Origin: Oculina patagonica
Lineage: Eukaryota
Length of the DNA: 64,000 bases
Assembly: GCF_052425735.1 (NCBI RefSeq)
Contig: NC_135765.1
Coordinates: 16,368,001 to 16,432,000, forward strand
Direction of reading: 5' to 3'
Made by a program: the position numbers and the translations under genes. This document shows positions 13,101 to 56,296 of the stretch, piece by piece. The stretch's first letter is position 1, and each line of letters opens with the position of its first letter. A model generated the notes under the pieces. It was not told where the DNA came from and made no database searches. It worked only from the letters and a program-made list of their open reading frames with translations.

Positions 13101-14130
13101 TAACGTTATCGCAATGTTTTTATTGGTTAGTTGCATAAACACACGTAACCACCTATTGTAAATTTGTCAGGTTTTGTGCATTGTCATCCCCCAAAATAGC
13201 GAAAAAAACTTACTCTTAAGTACTTTTCCAGGCGTCATAACCATTTCCCTCTATTAACTATGATATAATTGATATTTGTGGCCCTCTACGAAGGAAACAG
13301 GGAAAAACGTAAACAATAGGCAGTGTGCGAAATGATACGCCAGCTTCAGAGCAGTGAATACAGTTATTTATACCAGGCGTGTAATCTTGATATAAAAGAA
13401 TCGTGTACCGGACCGGAATGTAGCAAGAATTGAATTGGCGGCGGCGTGAAGACGTAAGTCGCGGCCGTCCGCCAAAGTTTGTTACCATATCGTGGTAAAT
13501 GGCCGATTTAGTCGCGTTATCTCTAAACAAAAAGGAAAACTAGGTCACTAAAGCCTTCGGACGAGTTATCTCTCTCGCCAGATTTGAAGAAAACTTAGCA
13601 ATTCACCTAAAAATATAACTAAAAATATAACATCCCGCGAAAACTTCACCGGCAAAAATTCGAGTGTTTTCTGGTTCACATTTCCTCTTGAAGATCGCCA
13701 TGGAAGTGATACCAAAAAAAAGTTATTCCACGCTTGGCAGGCGGGAGAACTTTTTAACCCATTGCTTGAGAACATTCATGGATAATAGGTCATAATAACA
13801 AGCCCGTTCCCGTCTAATTTGCATATTCGTGTCTACGTGCTTGTTCCACTTGACTGCGCATTATCTAACACCTAGCGTAGCGTTTGCTTTCCCATCTCAA
13901 GTCAATGCATGAGTGTAGTGTAAACACTACACTAAAAATCCAAATAATTCTCGGTTTCTGATATAGAAACAATTGTATGTAAATGGAAAGTGTGTAACAA
14001 CGAGGAGCCCAGGCTTCTGCTAAAAGCTCTATATCTTGCTAGATTTGCACGTTTTGTGTACGACGGCTTATAGCTGCTTTTAGAGTTGTGGTTTGTGACG
14101 TACACAGCGTAGCGGAAAACAGGAAACTGA

Positions 14131-14138
14131 TGACGTCA
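14131..14138 (+). promoter_or_regulatory. Palindromic CRE/ATF motif just upstream of the gene A start codon
   Basis: TGACGTCA 16 nt before the ATG; the same 8-mer lies upstream of gene C (60920-60927). Function unproven. Confidence 0.3.
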
Positions 14139-14154
14139 CTGCCTTTCCAACGCA

Positions 14155-17100
14155 ATGGAGGTAGATTTGGGTGTAAGGAAAGCTGTTGTATTTCTAGCAT
14201 TCTTACTGTTCACAGCTTGTAAGGGAATTCAGGAAGATGTGGTTGATGAGTCAAGAGTGAAGCACCTATTTGTGCAGAGGGATAAACCACTGCCAGGCTC
14301 TCCGAAGAAGCTGTACAAGATAGAACACGAAGAGAAGTCTCTGGCTGGTGGCGGACACAACGTTCGCGAGCTGTTTGGTCGATTTAGACGATCGCTAAAC
14401 CCGGTCATGAAGTCAGCTGATATGAGGCCTGAAGCTGTTGTGGTAAGACTTGATGTTGTTGTTTAAAAGATGAAAAGTTTTCTGTAATTGCCTCCGATCG
14501 CGATGAACATAATAAAAGCAAAAGTTTCTTTTATGATATTCATGCAAATTTAATAGACTCAAGCTCTTGACTTTCTTCCGCGTTGGATACTATTTCGCTG
14601 TTAGGCGTATTTTGGTTTTCAGATGCATCATTCACATTATATTTTTAGCTAAATAGTTGTTTTAGTTTCTGTATCTTTTATACTTTACTAGTTCTTGACT
14701 CTCGAAAGCAGGTCGCACACTAGAAAGTGAAATAAAATTAATTTGAAAACTAACACGCATTTGAACTTCCGGCTGATTTTATTACTAGGGACAAAACATT
14801 ATTGGGAACTGCGTTCTGAAAAGTTACTGTTTAATTAAAATTCGTGTATCCAAGATAAATTCTACTCGGTCTTTTATTTAGAAATCTAGCAATGAATTCA
14901 CCGGCTAGTTTTGTCTTTGAAGCTTGTTTTTCAATTAATATATAACATTGCGGGCTTCCTGTGGAAATAGTTTATCACACGACTTTAAGGGACTAAGTCA
15001 CGGTATTTAATTTAGAGCTTAAAGAGCTCTAAACTTCAAATTGGCAGAGCAAAAGTCTTTTATTGGTAAAAGCACGACCACATAACAAACAAGGATGATT
15101 TTCAAGCATTGTTAATGACATTTCATACGAATTGAGCTTAACTTGAAAATGTCGGACCGACGTTTTTCAAGTCTACCCGGACGCAATCCGTTTTAATATT
15201 CTCGAATTGTGTCCATCCATGCCCCTTTTTGGCCTTTGTGTGATTTTTTTGAATTATTCTACAGTTTTAAGTCGTTACTGTCATATTTCAGTTAATTCTA
15301 CGACCAGTTGGTCAGTGCTGAAATTGGATAAAATTGTGTGCCATAGCCCCTTTAAAGACACCTGAGAGGGCCAAAAACAAATACAGCTTATATCAGCTTA
15401 TCAGAATGCTTTATAGTCGGTCAGATACCTCTAAGTATTGAACCGGAAATAATTCTACTTTTTTTATCACAACGTCGTGCTAGCTTACACGACACTGTCG
15501 AGCAGAGGGTTTCACCCGCAAAAATTTCCTGCACAAGCAATGGGCCTAAAAAAAAGTTCGTGGAAGCTGAAAATGGTCCGTCCCAAAAAACGTCTGCGTG
15601 AGAGGCTACGTAAAAGTAGGTACAAAAAAATAATAAAATGCAAAAACTGTATCGACGCGAGTTATCTAAAAGAGTTTGATGCATTACCACAAACAGTGAT
15701 CTGCCATATAACGATGACGTAATTTCATAAACTTCCAAATATCTCTGATAACGTTTAGAAGAATCGGTGGCCAAAATTTTGCGCAGTAACGCTTATTATA
15801 AAATACCTGAGATTTTTGTGCGTATGTTTTCCACTGAAAAGCTATTTTTGTGTCGGATCGTTGTCAGGGTATAGAGAACAGATATGATGTCAGATCACAG
15901 GTATTCCTAGCCAAGCGGAGCATTTTCAGTCGAATTGTTTGCGAAAAATGAGCTTTTTCGTGCATTTTTGAGCAGACGTCGACCAACCCGAACAATGTAA
16001 GCTATTGGAGAAAGGTATGCGCTTATGGCCGCTTTAATTTTTGAGTGAATTTGAGGCTAAACATTTTTGTCGAGGATTTGTTTTCCTTAGAACTGTCAGA
16101 CGAGACAGCGAGCGCAAGGAAAACCTGCGGTCGTGGCAGACGCTTTGATTTCTTCAGTCATTTTCGCCTGGCTTCCTGTATGAATTCAATAAAATTTAAA
16201 AAAGAAGTAAATTGCTTATTTTAGTGTAAGTTTTTTCTAATAAGTTTCGAAGACGTATGGCTTTTAGCAGTTTGATACTTTGACATTAGAAACATAGAAA
16301 CGTTTGGAAAACAAAACATTATTGGGAACTGCGTTGTCTGGAAAGTTTATGTTTAATTTAAGTTCATATCTTCAAGATATACTTTAGTTGCTCTTTCATT
16401 TGGAAGCCTACGTAATGAAAGGCTAGTTTTGTCTCGTAAAGCTTTTTTCCAATTAAATAACATGCTTTATTTTTTTCCAAGAGGGCACGGTAACGAATCC
16501 TGCAATCTGATTGGTTCTTAGCGCGGGCAAGATTCTCCTATCTCTGCCCGCTTCCACGGGCCACGGTAACGCTTTCGTGAGTTTAATTTCGCGGCGAGAC
16601 GAACTAGTCCATGACAGTTTTGCTCTCCAAAATCGATGTTGTTGCTCACCAACCGTTGTTAAATTTGTATGGGAAAATTAGCAGTGGATTTAAAGGCCTT
16701 GAAGTTCTCCAAAAGGCGAGTATTCATGATCTTTATTGACAAAATGAAGTTATAGTTTTATGGTCGTGGTTTGTCGATCGATGTTTGTGCATTTGCACTG
16801 ATTTATCACGCCATTGCGGTTAACTGCAAGTCGGCGGGTATACAGACTCGATTTATCCGTTCAAACACCTTGCTTTTCTGCTACTTTTCTCCAAAAACGG
16901 ATACTGCTTATCGCCATTCAAGAAAATGAGATGCTTTATTAAAAAAACGGTCAAATTAGTTCTTGCAATATTGTGCCGTGTGTAGGCGACCAAACTACAC
17001 ATTTCAGCTTCATTCAGTTTCACTTTCGCAAACTTTTTATCAAAACAGAATACTGCGGGAATGAACACAGAGGTTTTTGACTCGTTACATACAAATGTAA

Positions 17101-20100
17101 ATAGCTGGAAAATATGTGTTGTAAGTGCTTTCCAGTCCGAAAAGTAAGTTTAATTAACTGAAAGAACTCACAAGCCGAAATGGATTTCAAAGTGTTTCGC
17201 GACTCGCTGATTTTTTATGCTCTGTTTTGGTTCTACATTGTGCTTTTTATTATTTCAGATGCTTTTTTCTTGCTTTTCTGATGAACTTTTCCTTGAGTAC
17301 TGTTCATTTTAGCGAATTTAATTTGTTTGGCAGTAAGCTCTTTAATATAGCAGTGAATATAGCAAACGAATCATTCTTCACTCTTGCCGTAGACTCACTA
17401 GGATGCGCGCGGATAATACAAACACATTTTGCAAGAAAATCTTTGTAGGTTTTTTTTTAATCAAACACGTTAGAGGTAGGAAAAAAATAAATAAGTTATT
17501 TACCGGCTTAGGGTCAGTCCGTACAGTGAAAAACTGTGACCTCGGCCAGCCGGACCTCCCAGCCGGCAAATAACATATATTTATGGTCGGTCCAGTATTC
17601 TCTAAGTATTGGACCGGGAATAATTTCTACTACTCTTTGATCATAAAGTCGTGCAATAAATCCCTTGCACGACACAAGCTTGCACGACACTACTGGAAAC
17701 ACTGGCTCTTAATTGGTCAATTGGTTAATATGATATCAGATGTTCATGTTTATAGGTCCTAGAGTATACCCTGTATCCATCGCTCAGGACACTATGTATT
17801 TATTCAAAGAGTTTTATTTCTTCAGTAATCTTCGCCTGGCTTCCTGTATGAATTCAATAAAATTTAAAAAGAGGTAAATTGCTTATTTCAGTGTAAGTTT
17901 TTTCTAATAAGTTTCGAAGACGTATCGCTTTTAGCAGTTTGACATTTTCCTTGCAGTCGCAATTGTACTAGCAATGACATTCGATTTAATTAATGAAAAC
18001 TTCGCCTTTGAGATATTTTGAGCCACGTTTTAAGATTGTAGTAACCTAACTCTTTTGCATTCTTATCACGTAGCCATTTCACAAAAGGAATAAAACCTCC
18101 GTTCTTATGATCTTTAAAATGTTGTCATTCTGTCGAGTACTACAAGCTATAACTTCTAAACTTTGAATATACTGAAGCATTTTAACATCGCAAACAAAAT
18201 CTACTCCCAACAACAGAATACTGGTAAATGGGAAGACGGAAAGGTGATGGACATTTTGCACAAAAAAGTAGAAGTGATCTATCCCCTTAGAGATAACGAT
18301 CGTTCCATTGAAAAGTCTAAAGACATTTCAATATTATGAGTCGACTGACTTTGAGGAAAAGATAGATGGCATGTATCTTTGCTGGAAGTAAAGGTGTCTT
18401 AAAATAACGATGCTGTGAAATAGTGTGATTTTAATTAACAATGACGTAAATTAAGGTGCATAAAATTAACGCGAATTTTTGAAATTCGCGTTAATAACAT
18501 GCATCGAAAAAAGAGGGGATAAGGGATCTCCTTGTCTGACGCCCCGGCCAACACGGAAGTAGCTTATTGTAAATCCATATTTATGACGCTACTTGAAACA
18601 TTTGCGTAGGAGATCCGAATCCACTGAATGAAGGATGGTCCGAAATTGAATGAGTGAAGGATCTTTAGAAGGAATCTCTGGTCCAAACTAAAGAAACAAG
18701 ATTTTTTAAAATCAATTGTCATGGAAGATCCGAAATAATTGCGGAGCTGAACATAATATACAGTACTGTATTCAAGTCAGGGAGAGCTTACCATACCTTA
18801 CCATACCATACCATACCATACCATGCCATGCTTATTAATCGTGTAATAACATAAACTGATCTATGTGTATTTTGGGATATTCTGGTGAATTTCAAGCCTA
18901 CTCCTGATTTAATTAACATGAGCCCCTGGCTCGGGAGACTGGGCAACCACTCCCAACGTTTACGACTTTAAACAAATACCATACCATACCATACAATACC
19001 ACACCACACCATACCATACCACACCATACCATACCATACCATACCATACCATACCATACCATACCATACCATACCATACCATACCATACCATACCATACC
19101 ATACCATACCATACCCATGACGAGCTTCAGTCGGGAAAAAAATCGCAGCATGCATTTTCTCGAGGCGTTATAATACGCAAATCATTTCTGTCAGCAACAT
19201 GAAGAGTTTTATCACCACGCGTAGTTAGCGTGTGATCATCACGTACAATAGGTCAGGTTTCATTTTAAGCGGCGAAATAAATTATAATGTTTTGCGGGAA
19301 ACTCGTGTGGCGGCAAATCATGAGGATTTAATGCTGTACTCGATGTTGCATTAAGATTCGATTTCGGGAGATAAAATGCTGTTCAAGTGTGAGTTTTCGC
19401 TTTACAAGAAGACAGTCACAGCTAACAGATTGATTGAAAACAAAGGCTTGTTCTGGCGAAGTCAACGAGTACACCGACTTGACATCGAACCGTTGCATAA
19501 CATCCATCGAGAACGGCTCTGCCTTTCTAGGCTTTCTAAACGTCTCGAGATCTCGCAGATAGAGTACGCGAAATGAGCTATTTTGTCTTCGGTAGTGCAG
19601 GTTCCTTTTTCCCTGAGCTGCAAAAGCACGCGCTCCTAAAAGCGGCTCGCATGCAACAAGAAAATGATGTTTCAGTCGCGTTTGATGATTTGGGTTCAGG
19701 CATCATGGATCATTTCTTATTGACCTTATTGGAATCGATCATGAGTCAGGCGGATTCCAGGTAAGTCTGTTCCATATATTTTTACCGCCGAGAAGGTTAT
19801 TCACAAAGTGTAAGAAAAGAAACGTTTACCGCTCATGAGTAACGGCAAATGAAAATAATTCATTAAAAAGAATTAAACGAAGCTTCAACTTACTACTCCC
19901 CTCCATTAGCTACAGTAACAGTTACAGTTAATTGGCAAACGTTATTGATTTTTAAATCAATTCAATTCTGGGGCTAGCAATACCTGCAGGATAACAGTTT
20001 CATAACTGATAACTTGCGCAAATATTGCTTTAATCAATCCTTTACTGTCTAGGGTAGCAATACCTGATGGTAAAAGTTTAACAACTTGCGAGAATATTGC

Positions 20101-23100
20101 TTTAATCAAGCCTTTACTGTCTGGGGTAGCAATACCTGATGGTAAAAGTTTAACAACTTGCGAGAATATTGCTTTAATCAAGCCTTTACTGTCTGGGGTA
20201 GCAATACCTGATGGTAAAAGTTTAACACCGTGCGAGAATATTGCTTTAATGAAGCCTTTACTGTCTGGGGTAGCAATACCTGATGGTAAAAGTTTAACAA
20301 CTTGCGAGAATATTGCTTTAATCAAGCCTTTTCTATCTGGGGTAGCAGATACCTGATGGTAAAAGTTTAACACCGTGCGAGAATATTGCTTTAATGAAGC
20401 CTTTACTGTCTGGGGTAGCAGATACCTGATGGTAAAAGTTTAACAACTTGTGAGAATATTGCTTTAATCAATCCTGTACTGTCTGGGGTAGAAACAAATC
20501 GTCCCAATTTGAAGTTCTTTTAGTATAGACGCTGGATAAAATACTGTACTTTGTTGTCCAGCAGTAAAGACAGCTAAATTTTGCCAGTCGTTCCTATTTG
20601 TTATTGTTTGTTTAGTACTTTTACCGGGAAATTAATATGGGATTTGTCACAGATTTTTAGGTTTAGTTGAGCTTGCTACAGCAGTGGAAAGCGTTCGAGC
20701 GATAATATTAATTCACGGTATATCGTTTTTCCTTGCCTTAGCCTTATTATATCTTGGTGCTGAAGAAAGGAGTTCATGCTAATGTCCGCCCAAAAAACTA
20801 TTATATTTGCCGTTTTGCGAAAAAAGAAGAAGCCGGCGCAGATTAACTTTAATTGTGAAAAAGCGCGTGCATTGTTGCCGTAGAAGCGCATTTAAAATAA
20901 GTTTGCATTTTGTCGAAACGGAGATCTATAAACATGACAGCTTTATCGGCTTTACGTACGAGTTTATATTCTTCGAATTTGTGATGTTTCTCCGATCCTC
21001 CTGCGAATAAAACACCGCCAGCTGTATTCGGTCCACTTATTGAGGAGCTAAAATTACCTTTTTACCCTGTAATGAATTGTAACCATCTGTCAGCAAAGAT
21101 ATTTCTTGGGGCGCACAACTAATTAAAATAACACTTTGGTTCTTCTGGTTATTCTGCGAGGTGCTAAATAACTTGATCGAGTTACGTATGCAAATGAGCT
21201 GAGTGTGCATTGAGTGCACACTCAGCTCATTTGCATAATCGGTTTTTGCTGGTCAAAGATCGTCATGATACCATACCCTACCCTACCCTACCATACCATA
21301 CCATACCATACCATACCATACCATACCATACCATACCATACCATACCATACCATACCATACCATACCATACCATACCACACCATACCACACCACACCATA
21401 CCACACCATACCACACCATACCNNNNNNNNNNNNNNNNNNNNNNNNNNNNNNNNNNNNNNNNNNNNNNNNNNNNNNNNNNNNNNNNNNNNNNNNNNNNNN
21501 NNNNNNNNNNNNNNNNNNNNNNNNNNNNNNNNNNNNNNNNNNNNNNNNNNNNNNNNNNNNNNNNNNNNNNNNNNNNNNNNNNNNNNNNNNNNNNNNNNNN
21601 NNNNNNNNNNNNNNNNNNNNNNNNNNNNNNNNNNNNNNNNNNNNNNNNNNNNNNNNNNNNNNNNNATAAAATAAACTGATGTATGTGTATTTTGGGATAT
21701 TCTGGCGAATTTCAAGCCTACTCCTAATTAAATTAAGCGTTTTGTGCATCAGGGCACTACATATACATCAAATGTTATCGATGCGGCCTAGTGTTTGAGA
21801 TAGTGGGATTTTGCTTTACAATTATTTTACTGTTATACATGTTTTTTTCTAGCTGCAGGCCTACAGTGTTGATGGTGGTGGTGAGTTTTCTGCTCCTCAG
21901 GAAAAACTACCACAGCGGCCAACAGGTATGGCGGAGTTTGGTATGCTGTGTAATGTATTAGATCAAGTTAACCCTATAAACTAATTTGTGCAAATTGTAT
22001 GATATGATATTTAGGGTAATATTGTAATTAATTTAATTTTAAAGAAGTATTTTGGTTTCGTAGAAATAAAGATGTAAATAAATTACAGAAAGCTTTAGAC
22101 ACACGTCTCTGAAATGAAAGAAAAATTACATGCCCCGAGCAGGATTCGAACCAGCGTCTCCCTGTTACTAGTCAAGACAAGGTATTCGCTGGCCAGTATC
22201 ACATGACCAAATCGCGGGCTCAGGTGTACACCTCATCGAGATCATGTGTTTTTTTAAGGCAGACCGCTGATCAAGTTACTTTTTACCATTGTATCACGGG
22301 CTCAAATCTTACTTTTTTGCCTAATGAAGTAGGATTTTGTGAGCACCATTTCTTCGATTGGAGTTGACTTCTTTCGGCTATGGATCTTTCTTGAGCAGTA
22401 TACGTTTAATAATTTTAAAAACAGTATTTTTTAAAAAGTAGTCTTTTCAATGAGAGCATTTTCGAAAATAAGTGTGGAGCTCCGCTTTTAGGCTTGTCTA
22501 AATTTTTAATGTGTCAATGCTTGACACATTGGACATGTGAGAAAAAGAAATGCCCACATGACCAGTCAATGGAAATCATTGATTGAAAGTCAATCGATAA
22601 ACCAATATCACTGAAGATTATTAGTTGATGGTGATTAATATCAACCAATCAGTAGTAAATCAATAGATTCAAGTAAAATATTCTTACACCGATTGGGGTC
22701 AACTGCTGGCCATTGTTGTTGGTCACTACCGATTGTTATAATCCATCAAATATTTTTCACGTTGTGATTGTCTAAACATGTCATGTGATGCAGCCAAAAC
22801 TGGGGAATATCACCTGATATTCCCCAGTTTTCAAACTTTGCATTTTGCATTCGCACCTCTAGTTTTCATCCTGAGCAAATTGTTTAACTGGATTAAGAAC
22901 TGAACATTTTGAACAAGCTAATAATATTAACTTTTGAACACAGACAAAATTACTTTGACGTTTAAAAACTCTTGAAAAAGATCATTCCCAAAATCAGCAG
23001 CCTTATGTAAAAATATTTAAATGGTAATAAACACAATAGCCCCCATTGCCTTCAAAATTATGCAGTGACCTTTATCCTTGGGCATTATCTGTTCCCCCCA

Positions 23101-26100
23101 AGATCACAGTTTAGTGTTGTCACAACTTTTAGTGCTCTCAAGCAGACACTTGCAGGTAGCATATCTCTTGTCCAGATTGTGATGAGCTTTTACCAGGGTC
23201 AGCAGCAATTTCTGTTCCCTTCACTATTCACCTTTTTCAAACAATCGAAAATAGATCCAAAATTATCATAGGAACGAATTATCGGTAGGTTTATGATAAT
23301 TATACGTGTATAATGATGTGTATTATTGATTGTGTGCCAATGCTTTAATGTTTATAACAGAAAGTGCTCCTGAAGATGTGAAGGCAACTCCATTGAACAA
23401 CACAGCCATAAAACTAACTTGGAATCCACCAAAGAATGGTCCGACAGGTCAAATTGTAAGTTGCAATGATTTTAAAATGGCTTGATATCAGGCTTACAGT
23501 TACTTATAGACACAGCAACTCGAATTCTGTTGTTCTTATTGACTAAGCAGATTGAAGCACAAATTGAAGTAAAAACCACTCAATCACTAAATACACTCAA
23601 ATGTCATGGCCATTACACATAAAAGCATAATACTTACAGCATCATGGAGAGGGACGCTGTGACCTAGGGGGTGTGTGTTGGACTCTAGATTTAGAAGCCT
23701 GGATTTAAGCCTTTGCTTGGGTCATTGTCTGTTCTTGAACAAGGCACTCAGTGCTTAATAACATAACAATTTATTAGTATTATAATACTAGAACTAGTTT
23801 CTGGCCTTAACAAACATGATAAGTTAATGCAACATAGTGACCTGAGAAGACAAAAACATGCTTAAATCATTGTTAGTCTACATAACTGTTGGTGTTTATA
23901 ATAGTAGAGGCTAAAATTGTGGACAAAAATTCGTGGTTTACTCCCAAAACGTAAACGCCATATTCTCTTTGGCCTCCTTTTTGCCATTTGCCTGCTGTTG
24001 AATCTTGCCCAACTTTGTACCCTTCGAAGAGACCGATGTGTGTAAGGGGAAAATATCTCCCAGTTTTTTCATCTGTCAGCATGTTAAAACTGTTTTAAAA
24101 TACTTAGAACCATCGTTTTCTATATATTTTCTCTTTCCTTTTCTATACAGATTTACTACATCTACTATGGAATCTTAACAAGTGGAGTCAGTTCTCGGCC
24201 CGTAGGTCACACAACAGCTAAAACATTTGTGGTCGGCCACTTGCTACCGGACGTTGTTTATGTGTTTGAGGTGTCAGCGGGTTTGACAGGGCGGCACAGT
24301 GATGCAGTCAATTCCAAGGCAAAATTTGGTTTGTAGTTTTATCATACAGTTGGCTGCATTGCTTTAACCTATTCAGCATAACTGTGATTATTCCCGATAG
24401 GCAAAATCACATTTGACTTAAAAGTGCTACTCGATTCTGATTGCTCAGAGCAGCACTTTCCCCTGCTGGACTTACTCTAGATATCCCGTTCGGCAGTGAT
24501 GTACATCACACATATTAATCACAACTCGTACAAAACGGTGATGTGAATCCCTATACAATTACCATAACAAAATGGTTTGTAAAAAGAAAAAGGATGATAA
24601 TACTGTAGGATTCCGACTTTATGTCCTATGATTTTCTTTTGATTTCCGTGGTTCTGTTTTTATTTTGGTTTAAGTGGAATTTCAGAATTTTCAACACTAC
24701 CGAAAGGCTGCTTGACATATTAGAAATTTGGTTGTGACAGCTATTTATCTGCCAACAGCAGAAAGTTATAAATCACCGAAAAACAAGTGTGTGAAGAATG
24801 TTATCTATAGCAGACCATGAGAAGGCAGCCAATTAGTTTTCCTTGTACATGGAAAACTTCTTGGTGACATTAACAAAATTCATTGTTGACATCTAGTTTT
24901 TTCCTAGTCTGTGAGATGGTTGTTGACAACTAAGCCATCATCAGTATTTGTGGCCAGCAGTTTTAGTCCAGAACACATACTCTGACGTGTACAACCTACA
25001 GTAGTTACCAAGATCTCACATAAGATAATACTTCGTTGCATGTATCGAATACTTTGGCTTCTAGTGTGTGAATAAGCTCTATTGAGCACTTATACAGTAG
25101 TTGTGGATTCAGTTTTACGTTGACAATTAAATCTCTAGTCGTTCAGCTCTTAGTGGAGGGAGAGACCAGCGTCGGTTTTTCCTCTGCTGTAGTCAATAAG
25201 TATTTGTTATTAACTCATTAATTTCTTGTTTTTTGTGTAGATGCTGATAACGAGCCTGTCCACAGTCTGAAGGCTGTCGTTGTCAATTCGAGTAGTATTG
25301 TTCTTACTTGGAAACAGCCAGAGGGTATATCTCTTAGTAGCATCCAAGTATGTATCATCACTCTTTCAATCTAAAAATCAATTTTAATACAAACCATAGT
25401 CAATGGCATGTAATACGATTGAATACGATATGCGTGAGGATGACTCACATAGTGAGTGACTCATCAAATGTGTGCTGCATCACTCCTCTATCCTTCACTC
25501 CAGTTATCAGACCCTGTTAGACATTTTTCTAATCTGCTGACTAGTGTATAGCGCTTGTGAATGTATTGTGAATTCTACCATTTTAATGAAAGCTTATGGC
25601 CAGCACTTTCAATTGTAACTATTTTTTTATTCCCTTCAAGATGGATCTTAGTTTATAGGTTGTGGAATGAACCCTTGGGTCAAACCACTTGAATTAATGG
25701 TGCTTCCTTTAATGTTTTTCAGAACTACCAGGTTAAGCAGTCATTCAAAGACGAGCCTGGTGGTATGAACACAGTCACCAAAAACACTAAAGGCAAGGAA
25801 ACTACCTACACATTCAGATACCTCCAATTTACCACCAACTACACTTTTGAGGTGAGGACAAAATTGGTTAAAGGAGACCTTGGCAAGGATGTCAGCATTA
25901 TCAAAAGAACTGGCCCGTTCTCAGCATCTGTAGGGCCTTTGAGGAAAAAAATTCAAGACAACACAGTCATACTGTCTTGGTCTGCGCCATGGACAATTGA
26001 TTTAAATAAGGATTTGAAGGTAAATTTTGTGCATGTTTTTTAATTTCTCGTCAGTAAGGCATTAATGTGGTTTCAATAATAAATATAATAAATAACAACT

Positions 26101-29035
26101 TATATAGCTCCAAAATTGTCAGGTGTAATGGTGTGCTCAGAAGCTTCCACCATGTAATAAAAGACATGTAATAGTCAGGAAATAGTCGTTGTAACTTCCA
26201 GTACTACACACTTCAATATTGGCCAACGGACACTTATTAATAATGTACTAATAATGTCAAAAGTTTATGTGAATACAAATCCGTATGTCGCACTTTCTAT
26301 GAAGTAATCTGTATAATTAACAATATTATTATGTTATGTTATTGCTCTTATAACAAGCTAGACTTAACCTAGCTTACTTGTTGTTTTCTTTTATCTCGTC
26401 CCCTCTAAAGGCTTACAACGTCTCTTGGACTTGCCCTGCTTGCCCTTACTACTACCCGCGTGCCGGTTTTAAAGTTGTATTAAAGGCGACGACTTGCAAG
26501 TTTCCAAACTTGAACCGGGACCACACTTATAACTTTTCTGCTCACGCAGAAACCATCTATGGTCCTGGAAAAGAGTCCACCACAACAGCCACAATAAGTC
26601 GCTACTTCGGCCAAGTTCAACATTTGAAACATGCAATTGAAAATTACACTCTGACACTTCAATGGGAGAAACCAATTGATGTGGACGTCAAAGACATTCA
26701 GGTACGATTTGTCATTCATTCATTTCTCTTGTAGAAAATGTTTTTTCTCTGCCGACTTAATTCACATGTTGTCTGACAACTTCGATCATTAGTGGTTACT
26801 GTTATAACTATTACGTTAACATCGTGTCATAAATTTAAATGTTTGACTGACAGATTGATTCAGTTCGTTCGTTCACTGATGTAGTGCGTGTGTGTGCATT
26901 CATACGTTCCCTTTTCATTCATGTTTTGGAGACTGTCTTTGATAGAGTGAGCCACACGTGGTACCCATGCACAGTTTTGTTTTATTGTTTGAAAGTTACC
27001 CGTCAAGTTTTGGTTAATGTCAGTTGTTTTCAAGGTAAAATGATTTTTCAGTCTCAAGACTGTTTGCCACCAGCCATTGTTCACGAGCGGGCGGGCTAGA
27101 TTACGGAGTTGTACTGCTGACCGAAAAGTGCCATCTCTTTGTTTGCAGCGCTATTTAGTGTCTTGGTGTGACATCACAACAATCACATACTGCAGTTACT
27201 ACAGACTCAATAGCACAAATGTCACTGGAACACAGTTTAAGAAGAGGTTATTTGCTGGTGACACCTACACGTTTTATGTTCGAGCTATAACATCTTATGG
27301 AGAAGGAAGAGAGTCAAGTGTCCAAGTTTCTGTGCCACCTCTCAATCTACAAGTGGGCTATCTTAATGGGCACTTAGAGGGAAGGTATGGACTGCAAATC
27401 CACTTGTACTGGTATCGGTGGTCTATTCCATATGGCCAAGATGTGGTGAGTAGACACTGTATGCCTCATGTTTCTGTTTAACTTGTACTGTAGTCTGTGA
27501 GAAAATGGAGGTTTTATGAACAGTCTTTCGGGAGGCAGTACTTATGAATTTTGGATGGCATGTGCTCGTTGGTCCATACTTTGTGTATGTTAAGACCAGA
27601 ATATAGGATTTCAGACCTGTCGGTAAACTTTGTATTGCTTAAGAGTTAGTAAGTGACAACTACTTATCGAACGATGTGATTAATAAGCATCTGTTGTTGA
27701 TGATTAAGGCAAACGTTTTCCATTAGTCCATTAGCGATTTCCGCAGTTATGTAAAGAGATAAGTTTGGTGATTTAGCGAACCAATCATGTGTTACTCGTT
27801 GTTTATCTTCAATTAAGGATTGTGTAATCTAATCGAATGCGGTGTTTTAAAAGGAGAGTTAACAAAATCGAGCCAGATTGCCGTGGTTGCTGTGAGTACG
27901 AAGACATCAAAGTTGTGAATAAAGCGAAACAAAAACTATCTGTGACTTGTTGGGGAATATTGTTTACGGGAGGCAAACAATTCTCCAAAGACGTAGCCCC
28001 TAAAATCCATACTGTTCTTCAGATCTACCAGGACTTGTCTCTGTTTGAGTAAAACGCCCTTCAGTTCACAATTGCACAATAGTGTGTCACAAGGCGGCCT
28101 AAAGGGCCTCTTCGTGTCCCATGCAGTTACTTAAGTTGTTAAATGTTATAACTCAAGAATCCACCAAGACATTGAATCTACACGAAAACAAATCGTGTAT
28201 GTGGTCTAACAAGCCTCATTCAGGTTTTGACTTTGTACTATTCAACGAAATGATGCAGGTGAAATGCGGTGTATTGTAACAATTATTGCCTGTGAAATGC
28301 CCTGGAGAAAACACAGCTGTTGTGAATGCATAAGCAGTGTTTAATTTTTCACATTTTAAAAATTTGATGTAAACATGCTGTTGCTTGAGTCCTATTCCAA
28401 TGTGATTCCCTCTACTATTTATTGTAATAATAAATGCGTGTAAGGGGGGGAATAGGCCCTTTGTATGACCCGGTCACATGAAGTAAGTTAAGGGGTAGCA
28501 ACTTTAGTTTTAAGTTGGTAGGAGGTTCAAGAAATCGAGGACTCAAAAAATCTGAAGTCAACTGTATTCTTCATTTCCCTAAGCTGACCCAACCCCTCCA
28601 ACTGCACACTGTTTTCTCAAGCAAAGCTGCTCAGGTTGGAGTCATCAAGTCTTTTTAACATTGTATTTTGTTTGACAGCAATATGAAGTGAGATGGCATT
28701 GTATAAGAGGCCGTGGGGGCTGTTACTGGAGTCAGGGGTCTTCCTGGCAAATGCAGACTGTGAACACAACATCTGTATATCTAAATATGACACGCTATGA
28801 TACAGCATACTTGTTTGAAGTTCGAGTGGTGACACCCCAAGGCAGAGGACGGCCCATACAATATTATTTGTCTACTAATGCATTGAGTGGAATACCTCCT
28901 AATTTTACTTGCGAGGTCACACCATCCAACACCTATCTTGTGTGTCACTGGACACCACCCACAGATTTTAATCCAGCTGGATTTTATGTAAGTAACAACA
29001 GGTAGACCATATCTTGAACTGCGAGAGCTGTTTGC

Positions 29036-29071
<36 letters not shown>

Positions 29072-32000
29072 CAGCAAACGCCTTCCAACATGTACATTTG
29101 ACCAGCTCTGGGGCGGTCGGCATTTTGTATACATGTATATGTATTTGTCTGCATGTGCATTGGCATTTGTATATGTGTTCATTTTGTGATAAGAAATTGC
29201 CCTTTATTGATGTCCATATTGACAACAATTTCACATCTCCCACTAGGGAGATTAGGGTCAGAAGCTAGCGGTTGGTGGTTCAGTTAGTGGTTAGTGTTTT
29301 TGGTGGTTAGGGTGAACTTTTGGAAGGGCGGTCAGGCTGTTCTAGGGTGTTTCTGGTTTTCCTGGTTTATAGGCCATGGAGCACGGGGGGGGGGGGGGGT
29401 GGGGGCTGTAGCCCCCAAACAAAAATCCCACCCCACACACACATTTCAGTGTCAAAAGTATCGCTAGCACAGCATAAATTTGGTTTGCAAAGACACAGAT
29501 CGTTCTATAAGGATTGTCTTTGGCAGGATAATATGGTGTAGGACTTTCACGAAACTCATTTCTCAAAAAACGCCACTAGGAGAGGTCCGCAATCTGTTAA
29601 GATTGAATTTGACATTACTTGTGGCATCAGCGACTTTCAAGCGTACATTTTCTGCCCTCCGACGTCTAAAGAACAACCCATAAAGCACCATGAAGCCGGA
29701 TCGTCTGAACTGCCTAGTTATGCATTGTCACAAATCGATTGCTGACACACCAGACACTGTTTAAGACAGTTTGGAAAATTTGTGTAGAGGGATGCGCCTG
29801 GGGCTGTTCCAAAGATGCAGGAAATTTCTAAAAAAAAAGTCGCTCCACAATCCGAAACGTTGCTCGGAAGTTGCACCAAAAGATCCAAAAGGTTGCTTTT
29901 GAAGAAGAAGATTCTACAGATATATATATGATAATTGCCATTTGAAAGTAAAATTTCTAAGCGAAAAGTTTGATGACGTCGTGTTTGCTGACGAGTTTTT
30001 AATGCTGAATTATCCAAAAGTTGAAGCATCTTCTGAACTTCTCGGAATTTTCGGCGAATTTCGTAAATCTTCGGAGCAGTTCGAAAAATGGCGGGAAACG
30101 TTGATATGACCTTCGATACAATACTCGGACAATCTTCGGAAATCTTCGGTCTAGAAATTGCAAAAAGTTGCTCAAAATTAAAGTTGCTCGAAAGAAAAAA
30201 AGTTGCTCAAAAGATAAAAAGTTGTACAAAATTTGCCGAGAATCTTTGCGCTTGGCGTGGAGTACGATGCCCCCCCCCCCCCCCCACGTTTCCAAAATGC
30301 TCCGCCGCCTCTGCAGTTTTAGTACATGCCATCTGACAGACCGCACAAATGATTTGAAGCCTCTTTAACCTTTGTCATTGAGGCATTTAAATCACACTCC
30401 AAGAGAAACAATGTCCTCTTAGTTGCTTTTTGTGTTTTTACTTCTCTTTTGCAGCACTACCATTTTAGTTATAGGTGTGATGACTGCCTCTATAGACCTG
30501 TTCAATACAAAACAGTATATGGTTTCAATCAAACCTCGGTAAATGTAACTGTTTACAGTGGAACCCGGTACACGGCTTGGATCAGCGCGCATACAAGGTA
30601 TGGAACTGGAAAACAGGCTCAAACAACAACACCTACAAAGTCTTCATTAGGACCAGTTACAATGTTGACCGCTACATTAGACGACAAAGTACAGAACCTT
30701 GTTAAACTGACTTGGAATCCTCCATCCAGTAGCAGCCCTATTCTGGTAAGTGACTTTGTCCAATAGGATGCGCTTTTTGTGAGTGAAGGTAACGTGATCT
30801 AGTACGGTGTGCTACCCCGTAAATGAAGTGGCTATAAATACAATAAATTAAAGGAGTCTGATCAAGTTAGTACGGTGAAGTCTGTTCTGCCCATAAAATG
30901 TGATCACTTTCCTATAGAGATTCGTAATGTAAGCTGAGGACGTCATATGGCGTGGCAATTACGTCCGGTTTACACTGTGTATCAAAGCATCTCTCTTTTT
31001 AGAACTACCTAGTAACCATTGAATGCCCAAGGTGTGGTAGTTTTGAGCCAACTACGAAAAAGGTTATTAACCAGACCAGTTACACCCAGATACTTCCCCT
31101 CTGGCCAATCATACGTCTTCACTGTCAGAGCAGTTATCCATCAGAAAGCCAGCTCTAACCGCCAAGTAAAAATAACAATAAAACCTGCCGGCGAAGCAGT
31201 CTATTTTATTTTTCATGCAGTTATAAGCTGCAGCGGCCAGGAATACGTAGTGAAATAATTACATCGTGTACCACTTTTCCCCAAACTTTAATTACAACCA
31301 CACTCATGTACACTTGAAGTGCAAGTTTAATGTAGGGACTTTCTTTTCACAGTATTACGTGGTGATCACTCAATGCCCAGCCTGCAGTAGTTTTGAACCA
31401 CTTAGGTCAAGGGTTTATAACACCAGTTTCAGTCAGAATCTTCCGTGTGGCCATGAATACATCTTTACTGTCAGAGCAGTGGCCAATACGGAAAACAGTA
31501 CAGACAGCCAAGTCACCCTTGCAATAGAACCAACTATCGGACCGGTTACAAACCTGACAGTCAAGGTTATTCCTGGTAATGACAGCACGTATTGGATAAA
31601 ACGAGAACGAGACAGATTTTTGTTGACATGGGGTCCACCTAAAGCTGTACCACATGCTAGCATTGAGGTATTGTGGATATTTAATATTTTAAATCAACAA
31701 GAGAATGCAGTCTCTGATCCGGATCCGATTTCTTTAAGCTCAGTTCCGTTGGCTATTACAATCAGCCAACGTGGTTGAAAACTTGTACGCTCAGATATGA
31801 ATGCTGTCAGAAGTTTGTAATAAGAAGTCGCCATGTCGTATTACGACGCGCGCAATTCCTGGATTCGAGAAAAGCCTATTTAGATCCAAACTTCACGGGG
31901 AAATTGAGGTGTAATTTTTATTCGTCCTTCCCTTGGCCCAGAAAAATGGGGAGCAGATGATGAACGTACATCTGGAAATAGTTCTTGCTGATCAGGACAA

Positions 32001-35000
32001 CTGCCGAATATGCAACTACGTATACGATCAAAGCCAATTTAATTTTATGTACATATTTTGAGACCAAAAATATGGAAACAGTCCGGAGTCCTCACGGGCG
32101 CCTCTCTTAATTCGTACAGAAGCCGAGAAAGAACTTCGGACTTCGGACCACGGAATCCATCAAAGGGTAACTCCCACTAGCCTGATTTCGTCCGATTGCT
32201 CTAAAAGTGCTAGTTGGTCGCTTTTATTCACCTGAGTTAGCTGGGTAGATAGACGGTGTGAGTGCATGAGCTATAGGATAAGTGGAGTTTTTCAAAGTTA
32301 AAAGCCAATATCTTACCACTAAAGTCTTTTCTTTACTACTCTGTTTACTTCTTTCGTTGTTCGATCACAATACATGCGTAACCAGGCTTTTATTCAACCG
32401 AGAAGACCTGAATGCTAAACTAATTTGCATTTGGAGTGCCCCTGGCCACTCCCCGAAAAAAGCACCATTTCATGCCTTTGGGGGTAGGTATTCCTACATG
32501 TGGACCACTAAGCTAATTTGCATTTGGGACTATGTGTATAATGCCATGGGTAGGAAGATAATCCCTTCATTCGTGTGGAGTTCGTAAGATCCAAAGGTGG
32601 CCATTTTCCTTATAAGGAATGTAAAGGTGGCCCACCTGGGGGTTATACAAAGGAAACCATTCATTCACACAGGGAGTGGGATGAGGTCAACATGGGCTTA
32701 CCCGATTTCGCGACGATGAATTGGAGTTAAGAACTATTAACATCACCTTTGAAGTAAATTGAAATAATACAGGCTCGCTGGCTCGCCCTTTTACTACTTT
32801 TCTTTTTTTTTTTTTTACTGTCATAATCTGACGTTCTAATGTTGAGAGAAGTAGTGAGTGGAGAAAATAAAGTTTTATCGGCTACATTCCAGAAACAGTA
32901 GTGGATTCTCCGACGATAATAAATTGCACGCCGCATGTAAATAATTGTATTATATATACGAGTCGAAAACATTAAACAAAGTGCTCTTACAAGCTTAAAT
33001 TCGTCAAAAAACCTGCGTAAAAACTAACTCACCCTATGCGGAAATTTTTCTTATTTATTTTATTTCAAAAACTCAGTCATAAAAGCCGATTTTTCGAAGC
33101 TTAAATATTCACAGCAACAATCAGTGAATAGATTTGCATATTCATATTTGTAAGTTGTTACCACACAAACACACGCATAGAGTTGAACACCTGTGTTTTC
33201 CCGTTCATGCTACGCCGGTTAAAAGTCACTCGTTGCTTGTTTATGCAATTTAAGACAACCCCAGCTTACTCCATAGCGAAAGCCTTCAAAAATAACGACA
33301 ACGGCCACAAAACTATCCGAAATTTACATTTCTTTTCCACCGTTGAGTTGCGAACACCTACAAAATAAACCAAAATTCATTTTCGGTTGCCAAACCTTTC
33401 TTCTTCCATGTGGGGAAAGGCTCAAGTTTTGTCGCCTTTTTCATTCCTCACTAGGGGATTGAGAGTGCTCGTTGATCTTACGAGCTCAACACGAAATTGA
33501 AAAACAATACCCATTGTTTGTTCGGTTTAGTGATTGGCCAAAAAACAAAATCTCCTAGCAACAGTAAAAGTTTTTCCTACCCAGTGTTTTTGTTATTCGC
33601 CGTAACACCAAATGCAAATTAGTTTAGCATCCAGGTCTTCTCGGTTGAATAAAAGCCTGGTAAACCATGTGTTGCGATCGAACAACCAAAGTAGAAAACA
33701 GAGTAGTAAAGAAAAGACTTTAGTGGTAAGATATTGGCTTTTAAATTAGAAAAAAACTCGACTTATCCTATAGCTCATGGTGAGTGCTAATGTCGTGATC
33801 ACTTGAAGGTCTCAACTCCGTGCCTCACGATCCGACGATTTAGTCACCGCCGCTCTCAGCCAACGATCCTGACAATAAACCATGGTTTTGTGTTTTATGT
33901 TTCAGTTCTACGAGATCACAGTAATAGACTCAAATAAACACAAGTATGTTTCGGTGAGCAGAACGAAAGCTACTCAATTGATAATCAAGTGTGCTGACCT
34001 TGTTCCCGGGAAATATTACATTTTCAAAAGTCGCTGTAAGGCGCTATGTGGTTTTGGACCAGATAACCTCGCGGTTGGATACTATCCTGGTAAGTTAAGT
34101 TTTTTATCTGGTGTAAAATGACGTAGTCATGCTTACACATGTGGCCTAACGCCGCGCAACTCACTCAGTGCACTTGAAATGTTTGTTAGCTAATTTGAAC
34201 AACCATCCTCTATTTGTGTGTTTACAACTTGCCAGTGGAATGGTCTTATTTAGATTTCTTCATTAATTGGTATTGTAGATATAAAAGCTTTCTTAAATCT
34301 GTATTTACAGCCGTTTATTCTGCGCATTGTTTAAGTTCGTTTTTCAACAGTTGTGTGTTTTATTTGCTGACTCGCTTTCTTGCACATGATTACTTACATA
34401 AGGCATGCAACTTCGAGACCGAATGATCTGTTGCTGCCGCCGAACTTAGTGAAACAAATATATATTTTCTCGATTCGCCTTTGTCAGGGCTTCGGGCCTC
34501 AAAACATCCGCCTTCAAATTATACTCTGGTCTTATTGCATTAAGTTCGATAATCCTTTTTTTTAACTAGCCGGAATTAGTCAAAATTACTGTCTGTAACC
34601 ATTTCCAGAACCAGTGACGCCATCACCAAGAAGGTCGTCACCAACGCCATCCAGGACACCAACCATGCCATCACCATCCAGGGAACCAACAAATCCATCA
34701 CCAAGTAGGTCGTCAACAATCAAGCCATCGCCATCCAGCTCTAGGAGACCAACCATGCTGTCACCAACCAAACTGTTTACGTCGTTGCCACAGATAAACA
34801 ACAAGAGCCATCACCATTTTCCCTACTGGACAATCCCCACGGCCATTCTTGGCGTTATCCTTGTCATAATCGTGGTTTTTTTCGTTTGTAACAACTACCG
34901 ACGGGGAAAGCGTAGAAGTTCTGCGGAGAACTACTTTCAAGATACTACAAAGGACACCTCTGAAGGTATCTGCCAATATCTGGATTAATGATATATGTTG

Positions 35001-35742
35001 TGTTTAGAACCGGTTAAGACTTGCCTCTTTAGATGTTGCATGTATTCAGAATCCCTTGTCAGATTGCAAATAGTAATCAAGGTGAAGGAAATGCAGTTGT
35101 GACAACTTTAATTAAACGTGCAAACTTAAGGAAGACTATACTTCCGATGTTCCTCTTTAGTCCTCAAGTAGAAATCTTTTTTGCGACCAAAAGTTCTTCC
35201 TTTGGCTATAGCAGTTACCGTAGCCGTCACCTCGGAACAGTTTGACTGAGCTGAAAAAAGAAACTTAACGCTCAACGGCACTTGACGATGTAAGGAAAAT
35301 GGCAGTGCGGGAACGACCTTTGTTCAAACATAAATTTTGCCTTCTTTGTCTGTTTAATTGATGTTCACTGTCATTCGTTTCACTTGTTTCACTGAAATTC
35401 ACTAACTTCGTGATCACTTGCCACCAAGATGTCGGTTACCTTCGGTTACTGAGCTAAACCGTGCCTGCCGAGCTAGGCATCTATCTGTCGACAAACCTGG
35501 GTTGGCTTATGTTTGCCGATATTTACGGAGGCTTAGTACAGCGTTTACACGATTTAAAATTTCACTACGGTCTATTACGTAAGTTTCAGTTAAAACAAAA
35601 CCTAGTTGAACACCGTTCGTGAAAAGACGGGGTAAGTCTTTTTACTTCCTATTAAAATCATTTTTATTCCTTTTTTGCAGAGGACGAAATGCCCATCTTG
35701 CTGGAAAGCCTAACCGATGATGAAATGCTCATAACAGCTTAG
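14155..35742 (+). CDS. Gene A: type I membrane protein with signal peptide, furin propeptide, 8 FN3 domains, P/S/T stalk, TM and acidic dileucine tail (SorLA/SORL1-like termini)
   Basis: Phase-consistent GT-AG exons: 14155-14442, 21853-21925, 23361-23455, 24151-24328, 25241-25347, 25723-26019, 26411-26701, 27149-27445, 28679-28987, 30455-30745, 31353-31667, 33906-34089, 34609-34965, 35681-35742 (3144 nt, 1047 aa). FN3 signatures LxWxxP, YxVxW, YxFxVxA, GxG. RFRR|S at aa 76-80. TM WTIPTAILGVILVIIVVFFV. Ends EDEMPILLESLTDDEMLITA*. The exon 1-2 junction spans an N gap. Confidence 0.85.
14793..17945. repeat. Old tandem duplication in gene A intron 1
   Basis: 14793-14945 resembles 16312-16460, and 16150-16275 resembles 17816-17942. 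The second copy is interrupted by another repeat at ~16465-17578. Confidence 0.7.
14985..15355. mobile_element. TTAA-flanked MITE (Kolobok/piggyBac-type target)
   Basis: TTAA-GGGACTAAGTCAC...GTGCCATAGCCCCT-TTAA, imperfect TIRs. Confidence 0.6.
18790..19115 (+). repeat. (CCATA)n microsatellites with a retroposon-like 3' tail (18917-18978)
   Basis: Pentamer arrays at 18790-18825 and 18978-19115; the array resumes at 21268-21422. Confidence 0.85.
19116..21267. mobile_element. ~2.15-kb non-autonomous DNA transposon inserted in the (CCATA)n array
   Basis: Ends CATGACGAGCTT and AAGATCGTCATG (11/12 inverted match, weaker similarity further in); ATACC on both flanks. Confidence 0.65.
19968..20490. 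repeat. 72-bp minisatellite, ~7 copies
   Basis: Unit CTGGGGTAGCAATACCTGATGGTAAAAGTTTAAC...CCTTTACTGT recurs at 20049, 20121, 20193, 20265, 20337 and on. Confidence 0.9.
21268..21422 (+). repeat. (CCATA)n microsatellite
   Basis: Pure and variant CCATA/CCACA units running into the gap. Confidence 0.95.
21423..21665. other. Assembly gap (N run)
   Basis: 243 N. Confidence 1.
23645..23750 (+). mobile_element. Degenerate tRNA-derived SINE head
   Basis: Eroded A/B-box-like region followed by CATTGT.TGTTCTTG..CAAG.CACT. Confidence 0.4.
29350..30313 (+). mobile_element. hAT transposon remnant with a decayed dimerization domain
   Basis: 29560-29735 reads LLRLNLTLLVASATFKRTFSALRRLKNNP*STMKPDRLNCLVMHCHK (ERxFSxLRRLK..STM..RLN motif); G-run and C-run at the two ends. 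Confidence 0.7.
31003..31190 (+). pseudogene. Frameshifted, truncated duplicate FN3 exon (pseudo-exon) inside gene A
   Basis: Good acceptor; NYLVTIECPRCGSFEPTTKKVINQTSYTQILP, then +1 shift to SGQSYVFTVRAV..; aligns to exon 31353-31667; no canonical GT donor at its end. Confidence 0.75.
32265..33779. mobile_element. P-element/Galileo-like non-autonomous transposon with long TIRs
   Basis: CATGAGCTATAGGATAAGT ends, ~170-bp TIRs; 7-bp TSD GTGAGTG at 32258-32264 and 33780-33786. Confidence 0.85.
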
Positions 35743-35994
35743 AGAGCAAGCTTAATTAACAAAGAAACTTCCCTGGATTTTTGTTTATTTTGATGTATTG
35801 TTCACTCTCCAGTGTTTTGGTTTTGTTTTAAAATAGTTGGGTCTTAAACTTATAGCTGCTGGGGGCGAACCCCTGCTCCCGGCCCCTAGTGAAAGCCATT
35901 TATGTCCAAGTTTCTTTGCTTGTGTAATACTAACTGTACCATTTGAAAAGTTTTTCACTGGGCGTGGGTGGAGGATGCTAGATGTGGTGGAGCT

Positions 35995-54926: not shown

Positions 54927-56296
54927 TACTGTGTATTGTCGTGTGTTCTGCTATTAAAAGCAGCTGTTAGCCTTTGTGTCCCTTGAACACTACAAATTGG
55001 CGACGAGGATGTCAAACTCAGTGGAACGAGCGTTGCCGCCCTTAAATTTGACGGGTTCTTCCTCTCAGGTCGCCGAACGGTGGCGACACTGGAAACGATC
55101 CTACCATCGATGGCAAAGGAATTACGAACGCCTCTCGAAAGAAAGCTCAATTACTTCATTTAGCGGGCATGGAAGTCCAAGATATTTTTCAAGACTTTCC
55201 TGATCCAGGGCCGATCATTGCCGAGGAGGATAACGAGTATGTAGTGTGTCTTCGTAAGCTTGATGCTCTCCAGCTCATTTTCGTTCCGAGGACAGTGTGC
55301 CATACAAGCGCCATTTTTTTCGACAACTTGCGCCTACCAAGGGGGAGTCCGCTGACAAATGTATGGTTCGTTTACGAAAATAAGCTCGTCACTGTAATTT
55401 TGGCGAAGCTTTGGAGAAAAATTTGCGAGATCAGCTGATCGAAATTATCTCCGATGTTTAGCTGAAGAAGAAATTACTAGAGGTGAATAATATTACGCTA
55501 GAAATTGCGATTCATAACGTCCGAAAGTGGGAAGCTTCACGTGAACTAGCGAGTCGAATGGTTACGCCAAGTCAAGAGCAACAAGAACCCGGAGCAAGTG
55601 GTGGAGCAGGGACTAATGCTGTTGAAGAAAGGTCTGGGCGTGGATCGAAAGGTAAAGGTGTTTGTTTCAACTGTGGAAAAGAAGGTCACTTTGCTAAAGA
55701 CGGTAGTTGTCCAGCTCGTGGACGCAAGTGTAGTAAGCGTGGCAAATACGGACACTATGCTAGCTGTTGCAAGGGGGAAGGAACCCGAAGTTTGGAAAGC
55801 CAAATACCACTTTACGACGGGGAGGAAGACATCAGAGTCAAGAAAAAGTAGGTCAGGCCAATCTTGTAGAGGAATCGTTGGAACCCCCCAGGTGAGAATG
55901 ATTCATTTGCTTTTACCGTAGAAGAGCAGGCATGCAATTTGGCCGCTTCTAATAAGCCAGTGATTTGTGTAGGCATTGGGGGAGTCAACAGGGATGTGTT
56001 AGTTGACTCTGGCTCTGGGAGTAATCTAATAAAAATGGACACTGTTAAAGAGTTAAAACAAAAGGGAATTGACATTCCGTTGCAACCCTGCACAAGAAAG
56101 TTGTATGCGTATGGGGGTCGTGCGCTTGAAATCGAAGGTCAATTTCAGTCAGAAGTCTCTGTTGGTAAAACGAAGATTGGGGCAGATTTCATTGTTGTCA
56201 AAGTGGGTCGTGGTTTGCTAGGGCTGCCATAGATCTTAGAATCCTTCGTGTGGATCCAACTGGAACTCTTAGTAAAGGGAACTGTAACACTGTTAA

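Follow-up and report, generated by a model that had tools for sequence, protein, structure and literature searches.

A probable truncated SORL1 paralogue lacking the ligand-binding core, situated between two full-length SORL1 genes of Oculina patagonica

In human SorLA the FN3 domains number six (PMC5357279), and the receptor is able to bind its own propeptide (PMC6345817, PMC5357279). Its cytoplasmic tail carries FANSHY, an acidic cluster, and the C-terminal GGA site DDVPMV(IA) (PMC5357279), and the human tail motifs, including the pattern DDxP[LM]V, are described in PMC5357279 and PMC6345817. For a long time no part of the receptor was understood less well than the FN3 cassette; recent work showed that it drives dimerisation (PMC9942828). 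In that work, carried out in human cells, a construct reduced to 3Fn, the transmembrane segment, and the tail dimerised, bound full-length SORLA, and promoted retromer-dependent recycling without the cargo-binding domains (PMC9942828). Here we describe Gene A, which lies in a stretch of 64,000 nucleotides from Oculina patagonica contig NC_135765.1 (the window, C8:16368001-16432000; positions below refer to the window unless C8 is given). The best explanation for Gene A as a whole, which we favour with some confidence, is that of a lineage-restricted truncated SORL1 paralogue with a minireceptor-like action.

Gene A was placed on the + strand at 14155-35742. It comprises 14 exons and 13 introns, all of the latter GT-AG, with 26 splice sites intact, and the joined frame of 3144 nt (1047 codons) contains no internal stop. 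The encoded protein opens with a signal peptide and a propeptide. A 24-residue orphan FN3 end comes next, then eight FN3 domains, a Pro/Ser stalk, a transmembrane helix, and a tail that terminates in ...TSEEDEMPILLESLTDDEMLITA. A sequence-only reading of this DNA had described exon 1 as 96 residues with a signal peptide, RFRR|S at 76-80, and a phase-0 end, and had listed FN3 repeats, a transmembrane exon, and a tail exon; all of these were recovered. The signal segment of exon 1 is hydrophobic, and its donor reads GTG|GTAAGA.

The eight FN3 domains are encoded by exons 3-13, each exon beginning midway through one domain and ending midway through the following one. The Pfam fn3 matches (E 3.6e-6 to 3e-3) were partial because the exons straddle domain borders. 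Matches to fn3_SORL1 were weak, and a whole-genome search with this profile returned nothing above the cut-off because the FN3 domains are split by exons. The cytoplasmic part is about 60 residues long and domain-free. It carries the acidic cluster TSEEDE and the terminal DDEMLITA, both homologous to the tails of the two neighbouring genes described next, and a PDB search with the 20-residue tail gave no match.

The exon 1 protein had exactly two further matches in the 529-Mb genome, at C8:16268298-16268555(-) and C8:16448189-16448443(+), and Pfam Sortilin-Vps10 matches were found downstream of both paralogous leaders. These loci, P1 and P2, are two full-length SORL1 genes with Gene A in between. 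The sequence-only reading had asked whether full-length SORL1 is syntenic, and the answer is two copies on the same contig. P1 encodes, in order, a leader, VPS10P exons, 10CC, a YWTD propeller, EGF, at least 10 LDLa repeats, about 11 FN3 domains, a transmembrane segment, and a tail ending in DEDVPIIQGFSDDEPLVTA before the stop, which carries the DDxP[LM]V motif. The first VPS10P exon of P1 matched human SorLA best (7vt0/3wsy, E 2e-10, versus 1.5e-3 for SorCS2), and its YWTD module was confirmed against LRP/LDLR structures. P2 is collinear with P1, and its tail ends in EEMPLLLESLTDDEVLLTA and a stop.

Compared to SORL1/SorLA (human, P1, and P2), Gene A shares a leader exon with signal peptide, propeptide, and an R-x-R-R|S site at which cleavage is predicted. 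It also shares a homologous FN3 cassette of equal exon structure, the transmembrane helix, and a tail end made of an acidic cluster and DDxx[LM][IV]xA. Unlike them, it has no VPS10P, 10CC, YWTD, EGF, or LDLa, and so lacks every part known to bind ligands. Also missing are FN3-1, FN3-3, and most of FN3-2; the Pro/Ser stalk is longer (that of exon 14 exceeds the P2 stalk), and FANSHY is not recognisable. The domain content is nearly equal to that of the engineered SORLA 3Fn minireceptor (PMC9942828). Gene A differs from this construct in being natural, in keeping the native leader and propeptide, and in having an orphan strand pair and eight FN3 domains, against six in human SORLA.

Descent from SORL1 was evident along the whole gene. 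The leader of Gene A is 65% identical to that of P1 and 60% to that of P2. It also aligns with SORL1-type leaders of other species, and the spliced frame of P0012 continues into the VPS10P start. Amino acid identity was 41-97% to P1 over exons 3-13 and 65-94% to P2 over exons 3-15, with exon order and borders conserved. At the DNA level, the region from 22519 to 35773 is alignable, with 72-90% identity across many introns. Thus, the claim that Gene A is a SORL1 duplicate held: within this genome the leader is shared only with the two full SORL1 genes, the exons are collinear, and the introns can be aligned. The closest relatives of every FN3 exon are P1 and P2 on the same contig. Gene A is a SORL1 paralogue by descent and not a VPS10P receptor by domain content.

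Synonymous divergence (dS) was uneven along the gene. It was 0.05-0.09 to P1 in exons 3-5, 0.15-0.25 to P2 in exons 10-14, and about 0.56 to both in exon 1; the exon 2 values (0.56 to P1, 1.26 to P2) come from 24 codons, too few to carry weight. Judged from these values, the mosaic fits an older duplicate of the P2 lineage that may later have been patched by gene conversion.

Exon 2 has homologues in P1 (left 29313-29215), P2 (right 113895-114000), and Gene C (right 4062-4157), the last being a second truncated derivative treated below. In all three genes the homologue is the third of three exons of the second FN3 domain; in the full-length paralogues it reads LRAYNSLDGDGEYSS.... The short exon had been taken as the end of an FN3 domain, left as the scar of a deletion, and this comparison bears the idea out: exon 2 is a genuine leftover domain end. 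The intron 5' of exon 2 could not be aligned with P1, P2, or Gene C, and the paralogues are mutually unalignable there too; therefore, it holds no breakpoint information. The third FN3 domain of the parents (two exons, about 2.1 kb in P1) is missing from Gene A. The sequence-only reading had further proposed that the FN3 repeats expanded. The counts contradict this and indicate loss, as the parents have about 11 FN3 domains and Gene A has eight plus the fragment.

As the most plausible course of events, Gene A would descend from P2, the local SORL1 duplicate, and gene conversion from P1 would later have overwritten exons 3-5. An internal deletion would have brought intron 1 together with the final intron of FN3-2, taking VPS10P, YWTD/EGF, all LDLa repeats, and FN3-1, and a second, small deletion would have removed FN3-3. 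The frame would have stayed open because both cuts fell between exons of matching phase. The propeptide would have been kept first of all because the signal peptide sits in the same exon 1; since this exon encodes both, any secreted derivative inherits the propeptide. The product is expected to be a type I membrane protein from which a furin-type convertase may remove the propeptide at RFRR|S. The mature form would then start with a short, flexible segment, followed by eight FN3 domains, a mucin-like stalk, the transmembrane helix, and a SorLA-type tail. Its FN3 cassette might pair with itself or with the full-length SorLA paralogues, as in the SORLA 3Fn minireceptor, and its tail might engage the same cytosolic sorting adaptors as theirs, tuning endosome-Golgi-surface traffic without cargo binding of its own.

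Several observations count against this account. The length of an N gap in intron 1 is only an estimate, and in P1 the exon preceding the exon 2 homologue lies about 550 bp upstream, roughly at the position of the gap. A read or contig joining exon 1 to exon 2 was not seen in alignments that reached 18900. The FN3 changes of the Gene A lineage (39 replacement, 14 silent) are near neutral expectation, and the retromer motif FANSHY could not be recognised in the tail. Neither dimerisation nor furin cleavage nor adaptor binding is more than a prediction.

The two points on the gap allow a different explanation, in which the gap hides the missing exons, so that Gene A would be a third full-length or less truncated SORL1 and the deletion an assembly artefact. 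The N gap (21423-21665) lies between exons 1 and 2, entirely within intron 1 and 187 nt upstream of the exon 2 acceptor; being wholly intronic, it cannot shift the frame by its length and could only hide exons. In both P1 and Gene C, the exon 2 homologue is preceded, at a distance of about 450-550 bp, by another exon of FN3-2. Intron 1 contains (ATACC)n arrays at 18789-18829, 18976-19115, and 21268-21422, and with several such arrays nearby the two gap flanks could come from different ones.

The searches for the core gave a consistent picture. The P1 core exons found no tblastx match in intron 1 or the whole window, the 243-N gap being unreadable. In the genome, Pfam Sortilin-Vps10 matched P1, P2, and three other contigs and nothing in Gene A, and YWTD, EGF, and LDLa were absent from the visible sequence of Gene A, though present in P1 and P2. 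The first VPS10P exon has two genomic copies only (P1 and P2), and the first FN3-2 exon has copies only in P1, P2, and Gene C in the whole genome. A third core was not found in the 529-Mb assembly, unplaced contigs included. Thus, the loss of the ligand-binding core that had been proposed is supported: neither the visible part of intron 1 nor a third site in the assembly holds a core exon.

The size and position of the core also speak against hidden exons. The complete core spans 39 kb of P1 and about 98 kb of P2, and in both genes the first VPS10P exon lies 3.6-3.7 kb past the leader, whereas the 7 kb of visible intron 1 are core-free. A hidden coding-rich, unique core of about 39 kb is unlikely because there is no third core copy anywhere and no core exon in the readable 7 kb.

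The gap flanks themselves were informative. The left flank is (ATACC)31 (21268-21422). For the right flank (21666-21736), a 93% copy exists at 18846-18916, which itself starts 17 nt past a (TACCA)8 array. This 71-nt piece occurs only twice in the genome, both times in intron 1. Because the piece directly trails such an array in its sole other copy, the two flanks appear to be the ends of one small duplicated unit with a microsatellite middle, and the gap is probably an unresolved microsatellite. Formally, there is still room in it for one small exon. Taken together, we regard the hidden-exon explanation as improbable, and a truncated paralogue remains the preferred one. A separate feature of intron 1 is a tandem array of 72-bp units at 20011-20491 (6.7 copies, 94% alike), which is open in one frame and has no paralogue match.

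A second alternative concerns the joint between exons 1 and 2. Exon 1 and exons 2-15 could belong to separate transcripts, the leader being spliced elsewhere or a leftover, and the FN3-transmembrane-tail part starting elsewhere or without a signal peptide. RNA runs containing the exon 1 region were found in three organisms. Contigs of runs X5 and X2 were aligned to 13000-18900 only. Two X5 contigs aligned from 14305 to exactly 14442 and continued with 121 and 186 non-fitting letters; exon 1 is therefore transcribed, spliced, and its donor is used. Run X5 showed zero depth over the unique parts of intron 1 up to 18900, and no joint from 14442 was found there; therefore, the splice partner lies beyond 18900, where exon 2 is the first exon-like sequence. 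The partner itself was not seen. Deducing it from the run-on lengths of 121 and 186 was tried and dropped, as either model could yield them. In organism B (run X5), two spliced leader variants occur at 14305-14442, with 3 and 11 differences over 138 nt, and these may be either alleles or two Gene A-like copies.

Protein collections contributed nothing in favour of the joint. The exon 1 protein matched only short genomic frames among 1.84 billion representatives and in a 5.8-billion collection, and no spliced frame carrying the Gene A leader was present. The only other leader of the Gene A type, P0001, is uninformative on splicing because its 1139-bp contig reads through into the intron. When metagenome contigs were scanned for exact copies of the 14442|21853 joint or of the exon 1 3' end, none turned up, in a collection evidently without host sequence. 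The direct joint of exon 1 to exon 2 is thus unproven. It was predicted to run from ...GAAGCTGTTGTG to CTGCAGGCCTACAG... because the phases match, the splice sites are good, and no other candidate exon was present. Against separate transcripts, the matching donor and acceptor phases yield one open frame of 1047 codons, and exon 2 has a strong acceptor (pyrimidine tract plus TAG) and possesses neither an ATG upstream nor its own signal peptide. We consider two separate transcripts quite unlikely, slightly more so than hidden exons, and keep to a single Gene A.

The third alternative treats Gene A as a relic that is still transcribed but has no function, a young pseudogene still unbroken. Its near-neutral FN3 changes are compatible with this, one exon-like piece is already broken, and the gene seems restricted to a narrow species group. 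That piece is a pseudo-exon whose inclusion would cause an early stop at codon 794. In P2, the copy has an in-frame TAA in place of the Gene A frameshift, and since the two are broken differently, the pseudo-exon was probably out of use before Gene A and P2 split.

Set against this alternative, gap openings per mismatch were 5/265 and 3/288 in exons relative to P1 and P2, compared to 45/295 and 104/695 in the flanking introns. The exonic values are 8- to 15-fold lower (p about 1e-7 and 1e-11), the exonic gaps all preserve the frame, and there is no frameshift across 3.1 kb. The scarcity of exonic indels, together with the decay of the unused pseudo-exon, argues for selection on the open frame. 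All 26 of 26 splice sites are intact, and both the propeptide core and the C-terminal motif are conserved. Within the propeptide core KHLFVQRDKPLPGSPKKLYKIEHEE, 2 conservative replacements and 8 silent changes relative to P1 were counted in 25 codons, compared to 27 replacements and 12 silent changes in the remainder of exon 1 (p = 0.009), and this core is conserved in SORL1-type leaders of many species. Its conservation suggests that the propeptide may still be in use. Regarding the FN3 exons, lineage-specific replacement-to-silent counts in Gene A and the two full-length genes were 39:14, 49:25, and 107:47, so fast amino acid change is common to all three, and the full-length paralogues evolve equally fast there. 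A relic thus seems to us as improbable as separate transcripts. Membership in a receptor tyrosine phosphatase or other FN3 family, the alternative that the sequence-only reading had named, was finally rejected, since the FN3 exons are nearest to the two SORL1 genes and the cytoplasmic part holds no domain.

For a truncated SORL1 paralogue, a more specific role can be proposed tentatively, by analogy with the engineered construct, and we consider it rather unlikely in this full form. Gene A, and perhaps Gene C, might be natural minireceptors that associate with the full-length paralogues via the FN3 cassette and set their dimer state and retromer/GGA routing, and the propeptide of Gene A, released by furin, might act in trans on the VPS10P domain of a paralogue as an additional dose of its inhibitor or chaperone.

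Gene C resembles Gene A in being a truncated SORL1 derivative with an S/T/P stalk and a transmembrane segment, and it holds the closest copy of exon 2 (77% at the nucleotide level). Its first exon encodes a signal peptide and ends in ...LFGLGYRSLNPEIPQVRK; the BLASTP match to exon 1 of Gene A was weak (E 0.003), and the exon is probably a diverged leader whose convertase site was lost (GLGYRS). It continues with one LDLa-like repeat, FN3-1 to FN3-3, the stalk, the transmembrane segment, and an unrelated tail. Unlike Gene A, it thus keeps one LDLa-like repeat and FN3-1 to FN3-3, and not FN3-4 to FN3-11. Between the two genes, at 56000-58800, long frames with retrotransposon protease, reverse-transcriptase, and integrase-like sequence were observed (e.g., 57285-58466).

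Further observations were made on the two full-length genes. P1 and P2 are opposite in orientation and separated by about 180 kb. Over the 5' parts, exons and introns alike, they share about 90% identity, and the last FN3, transmembrane, and tail exons are very different, the exon 13 homologues sharing only about 41% of amino acids. The conserved 5' and divergent 3' ends suggest that gene conversion between them may be confined to the 5' part. P2 also contains internal repeated blocks. The segment 42667-43173 recurs in inverted orientation, at 69% identity, some 1 kb upstream of the P2 leader (C8:16446627-16447123), and a small neighbouring gene (mini-exons, 42422-43395) seems to have been duplicated together with SORL1.

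Table 1. Coordinates of Gene A features and of the related SORL1-derived genes.
Feature	Position	Strand	Remarks
5' untranslated region, minimum extent	13909..14154	+	contigs of runs X5/X2 continuous from 13909/13922 into exon 1
Exon 1	14155..14442	+	96 aa; signal peptide, propeptide core KHLFVQRDKPLPGSPKKLYKIEHEE, RFRR|S at 76-80, then 16 residues
Intron 1	14443..21852	+	contains the N gap 21423-21665
Exon 2	21853..21925	+	orphan end of FN3-2 (F-G), LQAYSVDGGGEFSAPQEKLPQRPT; starts in phase 0, ends in phase 1
Exon 3	23361..23455	+	first half of first complete FN3; 97% aa to P1, introns alignable too
Exon 4	24151..24328	+	95% aa to P1, 88% to P2
Exon 5	25241..25347	+	94% aa to P1 and to P2
Exon 6	25723..26019	+	Pfam fn3 E 3.6e-6; 91%/90% aa to P1/P2
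Exon 7	26411..26701	+	sequence comparison including Pfam fn3 and P1/P2
Exon 8	27149..27445	+	sequence comparison including Pfam fn3 and P1/P2
Exon 9	28679..28987	+	three genomic copies: Gene A, P2 (82%), P1 (80%)
Exon 10	30455..30745	+	86% aa to P2, 69% to P1
Pseudo-exon	31003..31165	+	decayed partial duplicate of exon 12 first half; 1-nt frameshift
Exon 12	31353..31667	+	83% aa to P2, 50% to P1
Exon 13	33906..34089	+	end of last FN3; 82% aa to P2, about 41% to P1
Exon 14	34609..34965	+	Pro/Ser-rich stalk, transmembrane helix WTIPTAILGVILVIIVVFFV, start of cytoplasmic tail; 65% aa to P2 transmembrane exon
Exon 15	35681..35742	+	tail (E)DEMPILLESLTDDEMLITA and stop codon; exon reads EDEMPILLESLTDDEMLITA, then stop
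Gene C, second truncated SORL1 derivative	61016 to C8:16439531		first exon 61016-61306, remainder C8:16432598-16439531
P1, full-length SORL1	C8:16212805-16268555	-	114 kb upstream of Gene A
P2, full-length SORL1	C8:16448183-16605419	+	45 kb downstream of Gene A; about 157 kb long

Duplication, deletion, and gene conversion have thus shaped the four SORL1-derived genes of this locus, and automatic annotation is likely to mis-join them. Gene A resembles the SorLA "minireceptor" that Alzheimer researchers built by hand. The conserved propeptide, in a protein without a VPS10P target, raises the question of a role in trans. A natural gene for FN3 domains, transmembrane segment, and tail, with an indel-free frame and two full-length copies beside it, is an independent hint that this module may work alone. 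Gene A therefore offers a comparative system for which FN3 domains and tail motifs matter.

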